NCBI RefSeq assembly: GCF_003704095.1
Contig: NW_020847337.1
Coordinates: 1-64,000 of the forward strand
Direction: 5' to 3'
Source: Pocillopora damicornis
Taxonomy: Eukaryota
DNA: 64,000 nt
Made by a program: the position numbers and the translations under genes. This document shows, piece by piece, positions 37,106 to 52,425 of the stretch. The notes under the pieces were generated by a model, which made no database searches, was not told where the DNA came from, and saw only the letters and a program-made list of their open reading frames with translations. The stretch's first letter is position 1. Each line of letters starts with the position of its first letter.

Positions 37106-40100
37106 TTAGCGATGTTCCTCCATGGAAGGTCCCTGTGGCATCCAATTCTGATCGCCGTACCAGGAACTTATATCACGCGAGTCCTTCCTGTAATATCCGC
37201 GCTCTATGAACCACGAATCTTCGCCCTTCTGACGCTCAGTTTCACGTCCTTCTGCACGCCGGGTATACCAAGGTACATTGTTCAACCTCTGAAAGGCACG
37301 ATCGTGCGCTCGATCGAAAAACCACGACGGATCTAATGGACCTTTGTAAGGCTTGCGCTTCGTATCACAAGGAAACCAGGACTCGTATTTGTCGGTGCTT
37401 CGTTGGAAATCTCGATCTTCTGCTCGGCGCTCATACCACGGCTCAGACCGCTGATGGGTGCGACCTTTGGCGCGCTCAAATAACCAATTAGGAGGTGGAA
37501 CGGACTCAACTGTCTCGGAATCAACGGAATTGCTTACTTTGTCTTCTTGCATGTCGGTATTTCGCCTATTCTTTCTTTTCTTCCCTTTGCTTGACTGAGT
37601 GCGATACACTTCGTCGGACAAAATCGGTCCTTGAGGGGATAACTTCTTCTGAGAATTTTTTGGCAGATTAAATCTCTTTTCCAACCACTCTTCAACTGAC
37701 AACCCAATATCTTTTGGTGGAATTGGGCCTTCGGGTGAAGATGTATCTAGGGAAACTTTCCTATGATTCGCCTCTTCGTACGAATAATCAGACCTTACTT
37801 GGCCATCTTCGCCAGAAATCGGACCTTGCGGTAACTTAACATCACGCTTCACAGTATTCCTATTCCTATCCTTCCACCACCTATTATCACGTGGCCGTTT
37901 CGGCTTTTCATCGGTTCGCTTCGGTTTCTTAACGGAACTCTTCGGACCTTGTCGTGACTTCTTCTTTCCAACATCGTAAGTCGATTCTTCAGAAACTATG
38001 ACGAAGGCCGTCTCTGTGGTTTTGTCCGAATCATCCGAAGTTTTTTCCGCGCGTTTTGGTTTAACATCTCCCTTAAGCAACATTCTCAACATAAGATCCA
38101 TGTCGAACGTAAAGTTTGTAAAACCAGCAAGCGCTTTATGCTCAGGTACCACTGCTATTTCTGACTTCTTAACTTCTTCTGGCATCTTGCGTTCTTTTTT
38201 ATTTCCCTTCTTCTCAGTCTTCGAAAATATTTCTTTTGCCTGGACTCTTCCATTTTCCCAATCGCATCTTTCGGTCGATTTCTCTCTGTCTTTAGTTCTC
38301 TTGGCCTTTGCCGAGTTCAAATCACGCATGTTAAGTTCTTTTTCTTTACTATCTCCTGCGTCGTGGTGTGTTCCAGAAGTCTTTCCCTCATTGCTTCCAG
38401 CATCAAAATATGGCTTTATCAAACTCCACGGCCAATTGATCGTTTTTCCTGGCTGTTCAAGAGCTTTCTTGGGAACATCACTTAACCACTTTCCAACATC
38501 TTCTAACTTTTTCCTAAAAGACACTTCGCCATCAGTCCACGGCCAATGACCCTGTCCTTGTTGGTGTTCAATGGCACTGTTATGAACATCGGACAACCAC
38601 TTCTGAATACCCTCCAACTGCTTTTTAAAGGACCCCTCGCCATCGCTTCTTTTTCTTTTTTCCTTGGTATTTTTTGGACGTGACGCTTCTTTTTTCACGT
38701 TATCAGACCGCATCTTCCATTCTCCTTTGGAAAACTTACTCTTTGCACCTTCTCCCTTTGCCCTCCGTTTTTCTTTATCATATTCAACTTGCTCAGCGAT
38801 AACAGAGTCATATTCTTTTTTTCGCTTCCTTTTCTTCTCATCCTTTTCCACTTTGATCCTCAGTTTTTCGTTGGCCCGTTTTCCCGTTCGTTTCCTTCCC
38901 TCCTCTTTGACCTTCCAAATCTTTTCCTTGCTTTCTAAATTTTTCCTCTTACGGGGCAGCTCTTTGCTCCGTAAGTTTTCTTCCTCCTTAGCCTCAATCT
39001 CAACTTCTTTGGGTACCCTTCCATCATTTTCCACGGTCTTTCTTAAATCTTGCCCATTAGTTTTGTCTACGGATTCATTTCTTAGTTCATCTTTATCTTT
39101 TAGTTTTTTACTCTCCACTGTACGCCGAGTGTTTTCTTCCTTTTTCCTCCGCTTTTCTTTGTCGAACTTGGGTTGCTCATTGACAACAGAATCATATTCT
39201 TTTTTATGCTGCCTATCAGCTTTTTCTCGTTTCTTCCTCGCCTTTTCGTTTTGTTTCTCCTTCTCCTGTCTTTTTATGTTACGGAGCTCGTTTAACCATT
39301 TTTTATACTCTTCTTTTGCCGCTTTCTTCAAGGACTTCAGTTCTTCCTTCTGTTGCCGCAGCTTGTTCTTCTCTTGAACAATTTTGTTCCTAAGGCGCTC
39401 CACTTCCTTCTTCTTCTCTGCACTTAAAGTTTTCTCTTTAAGCTTCAATTTGTTCCTCTCTTTGGTCAACAGTTCTTTTACTTTCTCCCTAAGTTCCACT
39501 TTCTTTCTCTTCAATTTCTGCTTTTCTCTTTTCAGTGCCACAAAAAAATTGTTCATCTCTGTTCTGTTCCTTTGATGACGTTCTTTTTCGGAAGAAATCC
39601 TCTTCTTCTCTCGTTTAAGTGCCTTCCAAGAGCGCCGCAGGTTTTTCTTCTCTTTCTCCAAACGGCGCCTTTCACGCCGCATCTCTGACACCAAGCGGTC
39701 AGCCTCCTCAGCGCGCAACTTAGCCTTCTTTTCTTTCTTTTTTAACTCGCGCCGGAGAATCCTCTGTTTGCGAATCTCTTGCCCACGTAACTGCGTCAAA
39801 TTTTTCAGCTGCTGCTTCTCTTTGCTGAGGAAGTGTCCATCTGATTGAACAGAAGTTCGGTTTCCCTTTCCTCTCTTCTTCAAGTATCCACTTCGACTGT
39901 GACGTTTTCTCTTGACATTAGAGGCCTCTTCGCTTTTTTTCATAACAGATGCTTCGTATGACTTTAAAAGATGAAAACCCGCAACATTTCCTTCCGATTT
40001 TCTTGATATCTTAGTATCTTCTTTGGTTGGTATGCTAGGCGCTTCCTTAGCATAGGATTCGTCGTCGTGAATCCAATTTCCATCACTTGTACTGTCTACG

Positions 40101-43100
40101 TACGAAATAACTTGGAGGTCTCTTTGCTGCGTTGTTACTGTAGGGGATAAGGTGTTCGCATTTCTTTCTAAATCTATGTTTGAATAATACTCCGGAGTTC
40201 CGTGGCCAAGAGGGAAAATTCCGTTAGGAAATAGAGGATTTTCAAAAGGAACACTTATTTTACGGAAATCTTGGCATATTTCTTCAGAGGGGCTATTGCG
40301 GCCTTTACTTTCTCCGTCTAAAGACTGCGACTTCTCAGTTTTCTTATATTCAAAATTTTTATCGGTTGTTATCGGATCTCGCACGGATTTTTTGGCTGTT
40401 CTATCCAAGAATTTCTCAATAACAGAAGCAGAGTATGACATTATAGAGCGGTCCTCAGGGAGAACACTTAACTCCTTCCTTTCACTGGGATAAGTGCACT
40501 TTCCAGTCTTTGACTGACAACTAGCATCCGTTTCTCCCTTCAAATGCGAATCTACTGTCCAACGTTTTCTAAAGTCCGTCCAGACGTTGTCCCACGTATG
40601 CTCTTTGGTTCTACCTTGAGACTTAATATCTAGTCCTTTGGAACCAATGGTGCCTACAGAGTCTTCGTGTCCCGGCGTTTCTGTCTCAATTGACAACTTT
40701 TGACTTGTATTTACGCTAACGGTTCTGAACCCATTCCTTTTCCAACGATGAAAATAATCCTTCCAGTACCTGCAATAAACGTAAGACAACTCCAGAATCA
40801 TTCAGTTACCCTTTGAAGTAGCTTCCTTGTTAGAGCAACACTGCGCAAATATAATTAACCCTTTACACCCTTACATCAGTATGCATATTCCCCATACTGT
40901 TTTCTACACAATTCCTAAGGTGCTGACAAGAAGAATTTGTTTATCAATCAAGAGAATATTTAGTTGGTGATCATTTCCTTTATTCTCATGACCTCACTGT
41001 GTCATGCAGGGGTTAAATAGTCGGGAGAAATTAGATGTTAGTCGCTCTCAGGGGTTAAAGAGTTAAGCTTGTTTTTACTTTGGGTTCTCGCTAGCTCCTT
41101 GAAATATGGGCTCTGATTGGCTGCCGTGTTCACTTTAGTTTTACGACACTCTCTCGAATTGCGCTCTATTGATACACCTTGTGAAAAGCCCAAAAGTCTG
41201 GAGAGCAAAGAAATTTACTTGATGACTTTCTCCTAAAAACCCTAGACAACACTGGACCTTTGTATATAAATGTACTCCTGTCTTGCTTAATACAACTCAT
41301 TACTAGTCGCTGGTCACAGAGCTGAATAAACACTGAGTAGTTGACATCGACACGCCTTCCCTATTCCTCCAAAGACAACTGAACACAGCTAAGCTGCACT
41401 TACCTATCTATCTTGATGCCTCCAGCCACAGCCTTTCTCAGCTTCGAGTTCTCGTTCATACGGCGCCACAGATCAGCAATTTGTTTTTCCTTTTCGTAGA
41501 GCCTCTCCGTTTGTTCGAGCTGTTCTTGTAAAGCTTTACTCCACTCACTGCTTCCTTTATTAGACTTCTCCTCCTCATACTTCAGCCGCCAGTACCATGA
41601 CATGACTTTGCTCATGCGCAAACGCTGTTTTACACTTTCGTGCATGCTCATGAGCTTGAAATGTTTCAGTTGGAGCTTTTCGTGCAGTGCTTTCGTGTCA
41701 AATAGATCATCTATTTCCTTTTCATTTTCTGACTCTTCATGAGTTTCAAGGCGTTCTTCTAATTTCCACATTTCCAGCTGATCTAGGAAATCAACTGATA
41801 CTTCATCCAAGGGCTCCATGGGATCGGAGTTTAGTGGAAGAGAGGCTGTCTTGGGCCCAGGTCTCTTGATGCTCCCAGACATCTCCAAGGCTCGGTTGCT
41901 GATAAAAACACTCAATCCTAAATAAAGTGGAGATTGGATATGAACCTTCATAAATTCATGAAAAAAATATGTTTCCTTCCATCAGCTAAATTTATTTTTT
42001 TTTTTTTTGGTTGTGGTAATATTTTCAAGCTGTCTCACAGGTACAACCAAAAGTGAAACATTTTAACTCATAACACCTAATCAAGCAGTCAGATAGTTTA
42101 TATACATACATATATTAAGTGTAAAACAGTGCTCAATACATAGGAGTGATCTCACTCTCTCTATCACAGCTCAGAATTTTTCAAAACATTATCCTAGCCA
42201 TGGGTGGAACCTTAAATCAAGAGACTCTTCATAAATTTGAAAACATTAGCCATTTTCCTAGTTTATATTTCATTAATGCCAAACTTGTTTCCCACCTGAA
42301 ATATTAAAGAGTCATCTTTCATTCTTTACAACCTACCATCATTACACACATTTTCCTTACTGTTCTCTATACATTTGATCAGGTGCTTACAAGGAGAATT
42401 TGTTTATTGATCAAGAGCTTCTTTGGCTGGTGATAACTTCCTTTATTTATGTGACCTTAATATGTGATTCAGGGGTGATATTAGACGAAGGAATAAGATG
42501 CTCCTAACTCTTAGGAGAAAAGGGTTTACCAAAAAATTTGTTTCCATTAAAAAAAGGCATCCTCCAAACAAAACCCTTGCAAAATTATCATTCTCTGAAA
42601 TACATTCATTACAGTAGTTAAAGAGCCATTATCATTATCATTATGCCTTACCATAGCCAATACTGAATCCCAGAGCAGTTGTTACACCCAGAACTACGAA
42701 CAAGGTTGGAATATCAACATGGAAGATATTGAAATTGTCACTTCCTTCTGTCGCAGTATGATCTTCCATTGGTTCATCATCCTCATCTCTTCCTTTGTCC
42801 TCATCAATGACTTCAGACACTTTTGTTAAATCAGAACTGCCATTTTCAACCTCATTGTCTTCATCCAAATCACTAGGATTAAATAAATCACTATCAAATG
42901 AGAAAATGCTGCTTGTAGACACAACCATTTCATCATGTGGTTCATTTTCATGACTTAGGTCTTCATAGTCTTCGTTTTCATCTTGTTCAGGGATTGTCTC
43001 AATGGCATTATCTTCGTCAGAACTGTTTGAATCATTACCAAAGGAGAAAGAACCACTCTCTGAGAGTAGAGGAAGTTCTTGCCAAACACAGGAATTACTG

Positions 43101-45394
43101 TCTGTTGATTTAGTGAGGGAATGTACACTTCCTGCATGATCAATGTCCAATTCAGAGGGCAACTGATCATCATTGCCTTCCACAGAAGAAACATCCTGGT
43201 CGACACAGTAGTGATTTGAAATGATCATAATACCATCATCTGCAGCACACTGGCAAGAGCTTTGTTGAACTGTTGAAAGCTCATCTCCTCTCTCAGATTC
43301 TTGACCAAGATGTAAATCATTCTGGGTTTTGGTTTTTGTTGTAAGATCAGAGTCCAGGTTCTTCTCTTCGACTGGTGGTTGATGACACTGAAATCCACTG
43401 AGGACCTCAAACTCTGCCTCTCCTTCACTGTCATCTGTAGCACTGGGTGACTCAAATGTGGAAACTAACCCATCAGCATTTGAAGGTGACTTGGAATAGG
43501 ATACAGAGTTCTTCCTTGGCTGAAAAAACCAAAATCTAGCTTTGAAATTTTGTTTCCTAGAATTTAATTTTTCTGCACACTAGTATAAGTTTCTTAATTC
43601 AATAAATAAATTAAAAAAGACATTAGACAATTTAATAAGATAATACATGGATGAATAACAAATTCAATTTTAAAAAAGAAAGAAATAGGCTGAATTAAGC
43701 TGTTTTTTATGGTTTCTTTCAAGTACTAAACATTTCAACAAAGGAAACCAAATAAAACTTTTAAAGCAAGGAAATATAAAAACAAAGAATGTTCTTCATT
43801 CACAGCTCCCTGAAATTCTAAGATTTAACCCTTTAACTCCCAGATCAAATTTATTATTCTCCTTCCTGTCTTATCATACAATTCTTATAAGGTTAGTTTG
43901 GAGAATTTAGTATTGGATCAACTAATTATACACAAATTGATATTTTTCTTTATTCTTATCACCTATCTAGTTGATATTGTATTGATATTGTAAGGAGAAA
44001 TTTTGTCTTGGTCACTCATGGGAGTTAAAGGGTTAAAAGAAACAAATTGCTTGGCCAGCAAAAATTTCTTCAAACAGAATCAGCACCAAATGCTATTGGA
44101 TCCATACAATTACTGTATTTATGACAGTAATTATTTTAAATATTGTTATTTATAACAGGTATTGCAGTAATTTTGGAATTTAAAGTAAACATTTATAAGA
44201 TCATTATTAAAAATAAAATCAAAAAACTTCTCTGCCTAAGTAGGCATGGCTAGTAACTTAAAATAATTTCAAGAACTTAGGTGGTGGCAATTGCTTAGCA
44301 TTAAAACACATTTCTCAGTTTTTGTTAATATTCTTGAAACAATCTCTGGTAGCTTGAAAATCAATGACTCCTTATAGCAATCAATTAAAGTAAACATTCT
44401 ATTTTTCTTTCTTCTTTCTCTGCACCTACAAATTTCGTGGCCAAATAAATCTGAAATTAAGATGATCATCTACTGATGAATTCAACATTAATTTTATTTA
44501 CATAAATTGAGTCAAAATTATAGAAATTCTACTTATCCAAAGTGAATTCTCAACATAAGAATCTGTATCACTAAAAATTTTCTAACTTAAGATCAAATCA
44601 GCCAAATAGTGAGAAGGTATCATTATGAAGCTGACAATTCCCTTGATATTTCTATTAAAATTAAAATCACTCCAATTTAATGAAGAACTTTGACCTTGAC
44701 AAAGAAATTATTTAACAAAAGTTACAGTTTGCTCGGCAACATAATTTTTTCGCCCAGTGCGGACTGCTGAATGTAACAACAGCAATGGGCTGAGAAAAGG
44801 AGGTAGAGAGTACAACAAATTTGTTATCATTTTCACGTTTAATAATAAACACCCGGCTTATGTAATCACAGGTGTAAAACGAACGTGGTTATCACGTGGT
44901 TATTGTTGACAGGCGAAAAGGTAAATACGACAAGTCCAAAATGCAAATTTATGGAGACTTGGGGACGTTTTGTAAACAAACAGCCAAAATAATAGTACGC
45001 TTGGCTAACTAGCCGTGTTGCTAATGCACGGGGGGGTTTTGTAACACCCAAAATTGTGCTGCGATTCACCTAAATTAATGCAGGTTTCGAACATCCTGAA
45101 TTTACACTCCAAATGGCGGAAAATCCCGGCGCCAAAATTTTGGGCGGTTGAAGCATTTGCATTTAGAATATACCCCACCTAGATTAGACGATTTCCACAA
45201 ATTTACCTATGTAGAAGGACTAGTTAAACTGAAGACATATTCATTTTTAAGCATGAGAGTGTGGAAAACCAGAACATTTCTTTCGCTGAAAACGACAAGA
45301 AACTTAAGATGCACTTTACCTCGATGTCAACTTTTCCATCCTTATCGACAAAAGTCCACTCGTTTTCAAAATCGTCTGACATTTTGGAAGCCAT
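37106..45394 (-). CDS. CCPG1: CCPG1/PBXIP1-like type II membrane protein (putative ER-phagy receptor), 4 exons, ~1706 aa
   Basis: Exons 45320-45394, 42652-43519, 41404-41917, 37106-40769 join in phase (5121 nt). N-terminus MASKMSDDFENEWTFVDKDGKVDIE resembles human CCPG1 ..SCGWTVISHEGSDIE (LIR + FIR1). Then an acidic disordered region, a single TM IPTLFVVLGVTTALGFSIGYGLSVFI, and coiled coils. Next to PIGBOS1/PIGB as in human. The gene model is solid; orthology is inferred. Confidence 0.65.
40855..41066. mobile_element. piggyBac-like MITE (TTAA target sites, CCCTT termini)
   Basis: ttaaccctttacaccc...ggggttaaagagttaa. Internal tgacaaggagaatttgttt...atcaagag is shared with copies at ~11418-11645, ~30130-30280, ~35150-35270, ~42330-42530 and ~51505-51710. 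Confidence 0.75.
43825..44036. mobile_element. piggyBac-like MITE, intact ends
   Basis: TTAA-CCCTTTAACTCCC ... GGGAGTTAAAGGG-TTAA: perfect 13-bp TIR plus TTAA duplication. Confidence 0.85.
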
Positions 45395-47500: not shown

Positions 47501-48119
47501 CTTTGATGAGCAAACTTGAACATTAGCAAAGATCTAATTAGACTAGTTTAAACAATGCCTTTTAAAAATTTGATCACTGAGTAATGTATAATTTTTACAA
47601 CTACCAATAAATGTATTTGAATTATGTATCATGTAGGAATCAATCACATCATTCAAATTCAGTTTTTTCCTCAAGCTTCTGTTTGCTACCCAAAAAAGGA
47701 AGGCAAAAAAGTGAAAATTAAAAAAAAAAAATTATGACCAATTTTTCCAAGTTCGATTTCCTACAGGATACGAAGTGTAAGCCATTCCCCAAAAATTTCA
47801 CTCCATCAAGGGTTTGCCCCATATGATATTTACCCCTAAAGCACAGTCTATACAGTATTCCACCCCAGCAGGACCGAGTGCATTTAACTTCCTCAGACAG
47901 AGTCATACTAATACTTATATTGCCATCACTGTGCAATTAAGCTTGATTCCACCTTGATTTTCACCTTATGAGGCTTGCGATCGCAGTATTCAGCTTCACG
48001 ATGTCATTTTCGGGATAGAAGTCACCAGCAGCCCACCTTAATTCATATCAAGTACAGGTAAATTCTTGGAGACATCACATTACACATTTCATTTCAGCGA
48101 GCGACATAAGAGAGGTTAA

Positions 48120-48386
48120 TTACTTTTCAGATGCTTTTTCTTCCCTTGCTTTTTCTTTTGCAGAATTCTCACTAGGACGATCTTTCTTTTGGGCCGACGT
48201 TGTGCTCTTTGCCTCAACTGCAGCTTGAATGGTGGCGCTATCCTCCTTCTTTGTACCATGTTCACTCACGTATCTCTCGAGCAACGGTTTGTAGATATAT
48301 ACACCACTTGTAACTCCGACTAAAGTCACTATAAATAACTGATGTAGAGGCATTCTTCCGATGCTTCTGATGAAGGAAAGCACCAT
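48120..48386 (-). CDS. PIGBOS1: PIGBOS1-like microprotein (88 aa; single N-terminal TM, charged tail)
   Basis: RMPLHQLFIVTLVGVTSGVYIYKPLLERY aligns with my recall of human PIGBOS1 [30 protein letters not shown]. Good start context aaaATGG. Divergent from PIGB, as in human. Confidence 0.88.
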   Translation of the reverse strand: MVLSFIRSIGRMPLHQLFIVTLVGVTSGVYIYKPLLERYVSEHGTKKEDSATIQAAVEAKSTTSAQKKDRPSENSAKEKAREEKASEK

Positions 48387-48505
48387 TTTAGGACCAGATC
48401 GTTACGGTCTATCAAATATCATCAGGCGTTACTCGTTAGCGATAGAGTTGAGACTAGGCTCCACACTATAGAGACGCCTTGTTGATTTTGATACCGAAGG
48501 TGAAA
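48387..48505. promoter_or_regulatory. Very compact bidirectional promoter/5'UTR region for PIGBOS1 and PIGB
   Basis: Only 119 bp between the divergent start codons; CpG-containing. Confidence 0.7.
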
Positions 48506-51500
48506 ATGGAGGTCGAAGAAATTGGAGGATCTGAGCTCAAAAGAAGAAAACAGGCTCAGATGGATAAGGAATCAGAGCAGCCATCTTCTATCTACCAGGG
48601 AGAAATCACCATGGTATCTCCAAATGTTATTTACCCGTCAAAAAATTGGCTGTTTCCGGCATTACTCTTCTTTAGGGTCATCAATGCTGTGGTGATCCAG
48701 ACATTTTTCGTCCCGGATGAATTTTGGCAAGGACCCGAAGTAGCCCATAGAATTGCATTTGGATATGGATATTTGACGTGGGAATGGAAAGAGGGTCTTA
48801 GAGGCTGGACTTATCCTTTGATCTTTGCAACAAGCTACAAGTGCTTAGCCCTATTTGGGATTGACACCGCCAAGTTCCTTGTTGTCATTCCCAGGGTGTT
48901 GCAGGCATGTTTTGCGTCGTGTGGCGACTTGTTTTTGTACAAATTAGCAGCAAAGAGGTTCGATGTACAAACTGCTCGATGGACACTCATCTGCTACTTG
49001 ATCTCGTGGTTTACACTTTACTGTGTGACTAGGACGCTGACAAATTCCCTAGAAACCGTGTTGACAACAGTAGCACTTTATTACTGGCCATGCGGCAGCA
49101 AAAAAGATGGCTTTAAACAAGTGTTCAAAGCTCTCTGTATTGCAGCGTTTTCTTGTACTATCAGACCAACAGCTGCAGTCATGTGGATTCCATTGTGTGC
49201 TTTTTATTTATTTTCATCACCAAACAAATTATCATTTATAGTTAACTGTATATTTCCCATTGGATGTCTGGCTATTTTATGGTCCCTCATTGTGAACAGT
49301 TGGTGTTATGGCACATGGATACTGGTGGAACTCAACTTCATCAAGTTTAATGTTATTAATGATATGGGAACATTTTATGGAAGTCATCCATGGCACTGGT
49401 AGGTAAAATTTGGACTCCTCTAGCTTGGAGCAGTTCTTTCCTTCAATAAAGGAAAGGGAGCTCTTTTTGTAGAATACAATATGTGAGTTGTTCTTCAAAA
49501 ATTATGCTTCTGCCTTGGCTAATACCTGCATATTTCACAGGTATTTCACCCAAGGATTTCCTGCTGTGATGTTTACACACTTGATTCCATTTGTTGGTGG
49601 TGTTTACAAATCTTCCCAAAGGCAGCAAACCTTGACTTTTCTAATCTTTTGGAGCATCGTTGTCTACAGGTTTGTTGCAAATGGAAAGAGAACCCTAAAT
49701 CTTTCTTTTTTAAATAAGAGCTAAACTTTTGTGATAATGTTTTGCCAATCTCTGAAAACCTGGCGATTAAATATTGGGGATGTTTGGTACAGACTGTTCT
49801 GAGTGAAAAGTGCACCATCCTGATTTTCTGCAACATTTGAATTATTAGTCAGTAGGATCAGTTGTATAGTTAAATACCAGATTATAATAAAAACTATTGT
49901 TTTCCCCTTTTTTCTAGTTTCTTGGGACACAAGGAGTTTAGGTTCATTTTTCCAGTGGTCCCCTTAGCCATGTGCTACTGTGGTTTCTATCTAAGCTTCC
50001 TTTCTGGGTATCCGTGTGAGAAAAAGGATCATGCATTTAGTCGTGGTTTTTCAAGGAAGATGAAATCTGGTTGGAAAGCAAAGATAATGGTACTATTTCT
50101 AGCGCTAACAAACATTCCATTGGCTATATACACTAGCACTGTTCACCAAAAGGGAACTACTGATGTCATGGAGTACATTCAAATTGAAAGCTCCAAACTG
50201 AGAAGTGCTAATGACATGTCTGTATTATTTCTGATGCCATGTCACTCGACACCATTTTATAGGTACAGTACTGTTTTTAATTTTGATGGTTGCTCCTGTG
50301 AAACTGTTTTCAGCTTTTTTTGTACATGTATTTGCTTTCCTTTTCTTTAGTATCTAACTACCCCATTCCAAGTTTTAGTTCAAGGAAGATGACTGAAAAA
50401 TAGGAAGTTCAAAAAATTTTTTTTGCATGCAAACAAGATAGGATCCATTAGGTTACAAACTTCATCATTTTTCTCATTTACCTCCTTGTAATTCACTCTT
50501 CTCCATGAATTGAAAGCCTAACACAAGAAACAGATTTGACCCATGACAGTAGTTACGAGTTACTGGGAATTACTGTTCAAACGAGGTTCAACATTATAAA
50601 AGTTTTCATGACTTCTAAAAGGAATTTGATCTTGTTGGAAAGGTCACATAAAGGCAAGATGTCGAATCTTGATGTTAAGGTAATTTACCTTGTAGGGGAC
50701 AACCTTGTCCTATTGTGAATTTACCTGCCTTCAGCAAATTATTAAATAAATAAACTTGCAAGAAAATACACAGTTTCTGAGCATCAGAATGCAAAGAGAA
50801 CATAGTAACACTCATAAGGAGTAGATTGAATCTAACTGAATCAGAAGTTTATGTCCTACTTCATCTTCGGTTGTGGATGAATATAAACCTAATAACTCAT
50901 TAAATAACAGGGTTTTTTTATAGTTTTGTACACAGAAACATAAGCATGAGGATATTAGAATGTCCCCCAAGTGATGAGGCAGGGTACATTGATGAAGCTG
51001 ATCAGTTTTACAGAAATCCCACATTGTGGCTATCAGAAAAGTATGGACTCTCTTCAGGTCATCAGGATCAGCTTCAATTTCCTACACACATTGTCCTGTA
51101 CAATGTGCTTTTACCCGTTAGTTGATCTTTCTTCACCATACTTGTATCATTCTCTTAGTCTTACAATTTTAAATGAAACAAGTCTAAATTTACCTTGGAT
51201 GAAAATCAGGTAAGAAAATGATTCTTACAGGTGAGCTGCAATTCACAATTTTAGTAGTTGCAGAAAAAAGCCTGGAAAGATTCAAGTTTTGATGAGATTC
51301 AAACCATGCCTCCCAGATTCTAGTTTAGCACTACTACCAACTGAGCTACAAGACTTCTTGTTGGGTGTCATCATCTCTTCTCCCCAACCCTTGTTGATTT
51401 GTAGTCTTGTAAAAATTCCCAATCATCAGCAAACAATTACTTTTTGTTCCACCATACAGTAAATTACCACCAACGGCAGTAATACTGCCAACCAAAAACT

Positions 51501-52425
51501 CCCTTTAACCTGTAGGAGTGACTATCATTTAAATTCTCCCTATATTATCAACCCTGAATCACGCACTAATGTGATGAGAATAATTAAAATGATAACCAAT
51601 TAAAGAAGCACTTGATTGTCAAACAAATTCTCCTTGTCAGCACCTTAAGAAATATATAGAGAACAGGATGGAGAATATAGATACTGATATTAGGGTGTTA
51701 AGGGTTAATTTAGCTTTTAGTCTGCCAGTAACCATTGTTCACTTTTTGTACCTCCTTTTTTCATAATTTTGTTGTTGTTTTGTTTTTACTTGTTACAGAC
51801 TCTTTGTTTTGTTCATTCATAATTTAGTGTTTTTTCCTCATAGGATGTAACGAACTGGTTGGGAAATTTTCATTTCAAAGAGGTAACATTGTTTGACAAC
51901 CACACTTTTTTATTGTAATCTTAAGTCTTAGATACTTGCAGTAATAATCAGTGGTTATATATTTTAGGGTTTTGCCTTGATCAACATTCTAAAATTTATA
52001 CTTTATTGCCTGGTGATGTTAAACTGCCTCCCTCACTTTAAATGATTTGAGGTTTCTCATTATGATGGAAGATATAAGTAATGACATATCAATCAAATTA
52101 TTGCATCAGTTTGGATTTTTTTTCAATCTCCTACCACTGCCATTAAATAAGAGATGGCAGCCATTTTTTTTTGCTAGGGAAATATTGAGCATTAGCTCGC
52201 CAAAATTACACCTACTTTCCAGGCTAACCATTCACAAGAACATATGTTCTTCATGATTGTTTAATCTTAAGCAAGGGTTATAATGATAAACTTTGAAAGC
52301 CGCATTTTAACCAGTGAAATTTGTTTTGGTTTTTTCTGTTGCAGTGTGCAAGATTCTTTCACACCCATTTCCCAGAGGGTCGCATTGGATCTGAAGTATT
52401 GGTGTACTGCCATCAGAACACATAG
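48506..52425 (+). CDS. PIGB: GPI mannosyltransferase 3 (GT22), 6 exons, ~559 aa
   Basis: Exons 48506-49398, 49541-49669, 49918-50262, 50924-51116, 51844-51882, 52345-52425 (1680 nt). Motifs QTFFVPDEFWQGPEVAH, GYGYLTWEW, RTLTNSLE, FYGSHPWHWYFTQG, HKEFRFIFP, FLMPCHSTPFYS, DEADQFY, FFHTHFPEGRIG. Confidence 0.97.

Follow-up and report, generated by a model that had tools for sequence, protein, structure and literature searches.

A coral relative of the vertebrate microprotein gene PIGBOS1 and its divergent pairing with PIGB

Human PIGBOS1 lies opposite PIGB, the first exons of the two genes overlapping and their promoter perhaps being common (Chu et al., 2019, PMC6814811). Its 54-residue product is held in the mitochondrial outer membrane by a signal anchor, with the transmembrane segment at residues 7-29 and a cytosolic C-terminus; it homodimerises, binds the endoplasmic reticulum (ER) protein CLCC1 through residues 30-54, and influences both Ca2+ transfer between ER and mitochondria and the unfolded-protein response (PMC6814811; bioRxiv 10.64898/2026.01.08.697870). 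The paper characterising the human protein stated that PIGBOS is without any paralogue or homologue (PMC6814811), and the table of a 2026 review gives Drosophila CG34210 as the PIGBOS1 counterpart (PMC13240139). No mention of cnidarian PIGBOS1 relatives or of conservation of the PIGB pairing was found in the literature examined, and the literature searched on PIGBOS with invertebrates or fungi yielded no description of such relatives. To our knowledge, PIGBOS biology has been studied in mammalian cells only.

A PIGBOS1-like coding sequence was identified on the minus strand of the window (48120..48386), the window being the whole 64,000-nucleotide stretch of Pocillopora damicornis DNA analysed here. 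The single-exon open reading frame (ORF) comprises 88 codons plus stop, running from an ATG to a stop at 48120-48122, and encodes an 88-residue product with the core QLF..T..G...GVYI..P..E.Y and a second in-frame Met as residue 12; it was found just as the initial annotation had described it. The PIGBOS1 identity proposed there was borne out by the Pfam profile PF23670 "PIGBOS1-like", which matched the product over profile positions 3-52 of 54 (E 4.1e-14, 52.9 bits; about twice the gathering score of 27), and by BLASTP against XP_053575879.1 "protein PIGBOS1 [Bombina bombina]" from a frog, with 21/46 identities (46%) and a pairwise E of 2e-12. When all 234,350,878 bases of the assembly were searched in six frames, this ORF was recovered as the sole PF23670 locus of the genome, with the same match at that site. 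A word-indexed search returned 12 close relatives, each with PF23670, and a profile of these coral relatives gave 67 matches at E<=1e-3 among 1.84 billion representative proteins, including the Bombina bombina PIGBOS1 at E 6e-6. PF23670 independently matched 67 of the 68 aligned family sequences (window protein plus recovered relatives), and relatives named PIGBOS1 in an alignment-based homologue search came from sturgeon, paddlefish, gar, lungfish, and whale shark. None of the retrieved cnidarian relatives was an NCBI- or UniProt-derived entry or carried a name from either source, which fits the view that coral gene sets miss such genes, as had been suggested for small ORFs in invertebrate annotations. 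One public gene call (P0019, 225 aa, at L020:6001-6168) looks over-extended, the family-matching frame stopping after 56 residues. The ORF is very probably a genuine single-exon PIGBOS1-family gene and the cnidarian orthologue of vertebrate PIGBOS1, divergently transcribed from PIGB across a putative shared promoter of ~120 bp.

The 88-residue product is predicted to have a single N-proximal transmembrane helix followed by a hydrophilic C-terminal region. The stretch matching the PIGBOS1 profile spans residues 10-59 (48210..48359, minus strand) and takes in the helix and a juxtamembrane P-L-L-E-x-Y, while hydropathy and dN/dS place the predicted transmembrane segment at residues 14-32 (48291..48347, minus strand), including a G-x3-G motif (G24, G28). 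Residues 14-32 hold no charged residue, the most hydrophobic 19-mer is residues 17-35, and the short N-terminus ahead of the helix contains two Arg and no acidic residue. The signature G-x3-G-x-Y-I-x-x-P falls within the hydrophobic helix and just past it; among 68 sequences from animals and fungi, G24 and G28 were invariant and Y30, I31, and P34 were conserved in at least 90%. AlphaFold2, run with the family alignment, gave one helix at residues 14-43 and a disordered remainder, with block-mean pLDDT of 83-94 over residues 11-40 and of 41-48 for the 10-residue blocks spanning residues 51-88. A disordered Lys/Glu/Ser/Thr-rich C-terminal tail was assigned from pLDDT, composition, and dN/dS to about residues 44-88 (48120..48257, minus strand), and the C-terminal 56 residues include 13 K/R, 11 D/E, and 11 S/T. 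The longer Lys/Glu-rich tail noted initially is present and exceeds the vertebrate tail by ~30 residues.

The second in-frame Met (RMPLHQL) to which the initial annotation drew attention does exist at residue 12 but is not conserved, relatives having V, I, L, or T at that position. A Met located 8-11 residues ahead of the P-L-H-Q-L-F core was present in 8/8 ORFs, each with A at -3; since this upstream Met is universal and M12 varies, translation more likely starts at the first Met, and M12 was ruled out as a general start. Two near-identical relatives (P0003 and P0005) had tail ends in an alternative frame (…LQKKKQGKKKH…; compare window 48116-48265, minus strand), which implies that the Lys/Glu-rich 3' end carries either indel variants of one base or errors of assembly, and that constraint there is weak. 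A further tail motif near the C-terminus, (V/M)(T/S)G(A/V)LLI(R/K/N)x(K), was common to the coral relatives L002, L024, P0014, P0016, and P0023 and was missing from the window protein and its closest relatives.

Selection was assessed in a codon alignment of the window ORF with orthologous ORFs from seven related loci, with dN/dS taken relative to the window. The ORF was intact in 8/8 loci (the window and the seven related), and its dN/dS against the coral orthologues was 0.14-0.31 over the whole length. Core residues 12-40 had dN/dS values of 0.016-0.106, with dS ranging from 0.44 to saturation and the amino acids almost invariant, and the tail was fast-evolving (dN/dS 0.18 to about 1). A dN/dS comparison among corals had been suggested at the outset as a check for a broken or neutrally evolving frame; it instead revealed an unbroken frame under purifying selection.

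The gene on the opposite strand is, from its sequence matches, PIGB and not ALG9, ALG12, or PIGZ. The plus-strand frame beginning with the ATG at 48506 is 298 codons long and its product matches Glyco_transf_22 (PF03901, E 6e-72); exon 1 of PIGB (GPI mannosyltransferase 3) extends from this ATG to a GTAGGT donor (48506..49398, plus strand). Exon 2 lies at 49541-49669 (plus strand), with splice sites read from the sequence, and a six-frame PIGB-profile search placed further exons approximately, within the plus-strand open frames 49874-50347, 50904-51122, and 52318-52422; the exons beyond the first, searched singly and not joined, span 49541..52422. Exon 1 had 155 relatives at E<=1e-20, and the names among the best 120 of these 155 were GPI mannosyltransferase 3, phosphatidylinositol glycan class B, PIGB mannosyltransferase, and APTG1 (the plant orthologue), in taxa ranging from corals and vertebrates to plants, the lone differently named entry being one plant protein; the nearest named PIGB relatives in this set were those of Acropora and Montipora. 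A solved-structure search with PIGB exon 1 gave no match. Four GT22 loci were detected in the genome, the PIGB locus included, a number that would fit PIGB plus three other animal paralogues. The other loci were an intronless 518-codon GT22 frame (L010, G000:C2073:66447-67751, minus strand; PF03901, E 3e-55) and two multi-exon loci on C4119 and C2814, collectively presumably the PIGZ, ALG9, and ALG12 paralogues.

Elsewhere in the window, a 1231-codon ORF (37106-40801, minus strand) drew no Pfam match at E<=0.1, nor any usable match in the Atlas, and more ORFs lay beside it at 41400-41951 and 42641-43228. CCPG1, a close neighbour of PIGB in human, was considered as the identity of the 1231-codon ORF, with the prospect of additional synteny with human chromosome 15, and was dropped on the lack of any Pfam or Atlas match.

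The initial annotation placed the microprotein on the strand opposite PIGB with 119 bp from ATG to ATG, and both the distance (exactly 119 bases, 48387-48505) and the neighbour proved correct. The divergent pairing of microprotein and PIGB recurred in 8/8 anthozoan-like loci with 93-302 bp between the ATGs. In addition to the window, the gap was 93 bases in L001 (568-kb contig), 128 in L002 (1.59-Mb contig), and 135 in L020 (456-kb contig), and on short contigs it was 137 bases in L003/L004, 117 in L005, 302 in L021, and 113 in L024. The labels "anthozoan-like" and "scleractinian-like" refer to taxa inferred only from PIGB similarity: identity to the window over PIGB exon 1 was 50-75% across the related loci, a sizeable depth of divergence, with L020 and L021 the most distant, and every related-locus exon 1 had only 35-40% identity to Hydra.

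The 119-bp spacer between the ATGs (48387..48505) would contain a putative bidirectional promoter together with both 5' UTRs. Three blocks, all in minus-strand reading, were conserved in this spacer across 6/6 scleractinian-like loci: block A (CAAGGCGT, 48474..48481, minus strand), which was invariant; block B, a central TGTGGAGCCYAGTC (TGTGGAGCCTAGTC, 48452..48465, minus strand), with 10/14 positions invariant; and block C (AACGCCTG, 48423..48430, minus strand), again invariant. An AGGCGTT core is present in block A and, as an inverted copy about 45 bp away, in block C; block C occurs nowhere else within the window. The A...C composite had 24 matches genome-wide compared to 15 for a reversed control, ruling it out as a common genome-wide promoter element. 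The spacer may therefore be regarded as a putative locus-specific conserved bidirectional promoter.

Members of the family were also recovered well outside the cnidarians. A mollusc member was found in the gastropod Nucella lapillus, where it is named a hypothetical protein (P0025), and fungal members as uncharacterised proteins of Phyllosticta citribraziliensis (XP_066659298.1) and Cystobasidium minutum (XP_066822813.1). The fungal genes have an intron within the region coding for the transmembrane helix (L006:5905-6210, also L007; L008:5911-6060), such that the profile matched two separate frames at positions 12-33 and 32-53. Two proteins of the diatom Cylindrotheca (P0230 and P0236; 78-81 aa) had precomputed PF23670 matches and matched the family profile over the helix core (E 3e-11 and 1e-9), so the family may reach beyond opisthokonts. 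The presence of the family in fish, a mollusc, and two fungi places the origin of the gene before the cnidarian-bilaterian split, and the corresponding claim of the initial annotation was, if anything, an understatement, since fungi carry family members; we infer that the family is older than animals and probably at least as old as opisthokonts. An equal age for the shared promoter, the accompanying claim, is plausible though supported only in part, the pairing being present in all eight anthozoan-like loci and, from the literature, in human, but missing from two protostomes and two fungi. No PIGBOS1-like frame was found within 10 kb on either side of PIGB in the limpet Lottia gigantea or the beetle Tribolium madens, in flanks searched with the family profile, which is sensitive to half-domains as judged by its detection of the intron-split fungal genes. 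Nor was PIGB linkage of the PF23670 genes found in the two fungi, the neighbours there being Mus7 and NIF/BRCT genes.

A homologue of the human binding partner is encoded in the coral genome as a CLCC1/MCLC-family single open frame (PF05934, E 3e-25, profile positions 60-297; G000:C2762:47355-48047, plus strand, L025), the product of which is a candidate ER partner of the coral microprotein. Based on the shared protein layout, the properties of human PIGBOS1, and this homologue, the same mode of action is proposed for the coral protein. With its moderate hydrophobicity, the helix would act together with the short, basic N-terminus as a signal anchor for the mitochondrial outer membrane, and the G-x3-G face of the helix could mediate self-association. 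The charged tail would then be cytosolic and contact an ER partner of the CLCC1/MCLC family, and this interaction may tune ER stress or Ca2+ signalling at the sites where ER and mitochondria touch. The human CLCC1-binding region (residues 30-54) is conserved in coral solely at the juxtamembrane stretch; partner binding may differ, since the coral tail is longer and fast-evolving and only the first part of the region is conserved.

Among rival explanations of the locus, one would see in the ORF a frame left open by chance within the promoter or 5' region of PIGB, with a profile match reflecting only a generic hydrophobic helix. It could appeal to the 25 ATG-initiated ORFs of at least 88 aa in the AT-rich window (37% G+C), which make the length of the ORF unremarkable on its own, and to the tendency of short transmembrane profiles to draw spurious matches, the long repeat proteins P0028 and P0031 being among the profile-search matches. 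The ORF nevertheless stands above chance because of its profile match, purifying selection, and repeated synteny: its score is double the cut-off set by Pfam, the amino-acid core stays invariant where synonymous change is saturated, the frame is single-copy in the genome and intact in eight divergent genomes, and each upstream Met has A at -3. A chance frame is effectively refuted and its probability is very small indeed. Another explanation accepts a true PIGBOS1-family gene and supposes that the PIGB pairing arose independently in anthozoans and vertebrates, or was not ancestral to both. The unpaired limpet, beetle, and fungal loci speak for such a history, in a comparison that covered anthozoan-like, limpet, beetle, and fungal loci and, from the literature, human. 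Much ancestral microsynteny has been lost in protostome genomes, however. The same two genes occur divergently, with very short gaps or overlapping 5' ends, in 8/8 anthozoan-like loci and in human, and it would be very unlikely for one particular pair out of many thousands of genes to be brought together again by chance; inheritance followed by loss elsewhere is the simplest account of finding one pair, identically oriented, in two distant lineages. An independent origin is consequently considered improbable, and the divergent PIGB-PIGBOS1 pair likely goes back to the cnidarian-bilaterian ancestor, to be broken up later in some protostomes.

A weightier alternative concerns function, namely that the coral gene is an orthologue by descent of which only the membrane anchor has been kept, with a tail that neither binds CLCC1 nor affects the unfolded-protein response. 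Conservation confined to about residues 12-40, the rapid evolution of a tail 30 residues longer than in vertebrates (dN/dS 0.18 to about 1), the frameshifted tail ends tolerated by the near-identical P0003 and P0005, and the presence of the family in fungi are all in keeping with a changed function. From corals to vertebrates, nonetheless, the juxtamembrane P-x-x-E-x-Y is kept and the tail stays charged, and a CLCC1/MCLC gene exists in coral, so that such a divergence in function appears rather unlikely, if deserving of serious consideration. Orthology with an ancestral PIGB pairing is retained as the preferred reading. Its fullest form is put forward tentatively, as possible though short of probable: PIGB-PIGBOS1, joining an ER GPI-anchor mannosyltransferase with a mitochondrial-surface microprotein, would be among the oldest conserved bidirectional pairs of animals, with an inverted-repeat promoter of ~100 bp kept since before the cnidarian-bilaterian split because co-expression couples ER secretory/GPI load to ER-mitochondria signalling, and the family descending from an opisthokont or earlier eukaryotic ancestor.

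The PIGBOS1 gene is ancient and the PIGB-PIGBOS1 pair probably is too. A constrained coral orthologue, together with mollusc, fungal, and possibly diatom relatives, points to a G-x3-G transmembrane helix plus P-x-x-E-x-Y as the minimal conserved core, in which case the long C-terminal tail would be lineage-specific, and simple systems are offered for probing ancestral PIGBOS1 function. The anthozoan pairing, the promoter blocks, and the human arrangement also make co-regulation from one promoter, the question raised by Chu et al., testable by comparative genomics.

Compared with the described relatives, the fungal PF23670 proteins share the profile family, the G-x3-G-x-Y-I-x-x-P core, and a similar scale (71-86 aa), whereas their genes differ from the coral gene in the intron within the helix and in having Mus7 and NIF/BRCT neighbours in place of a PIGB orthologue. 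Drosophila CG34210, a microprotein of 74 aa from an invertebrate, has already been treated as the equivalent of PIGBOS1, such that conservation beyond vertebrates is on record; in contrast to the coral locus, the sole insect PIGB locus examined, that of Tribolium madens, is without a PIGBOS1-like neighbour. Vertebrate PIGBOS1 proteins are shorter than the coral protein (53-66 versus 88 aa), which has about 8 extra N-terminal residues and a tail that cannot be aligned past the juxtamembrane part, and the coral coding sequence apparently occupies one exon, at a distance of 119 bp from the ATG of PIGB; that of human PIGBOS1 lies in exon 2. The vertebrate and coral proteins are alike in PF23670, in one N-proximal transmembrane helix with G-x3-G, Y-I-x-x-P, and E-x-Y, and in a charged C-terminal tail, and the genes are alike in diverging from PIGB with closely apposed 5' ends (the human arrangement being taken from the literature). 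The coral gene is a well-supported extension of a known family, Pfam-defined and RefSeq-named in many vertebrates, to which it adds synteny and promoter conservation.
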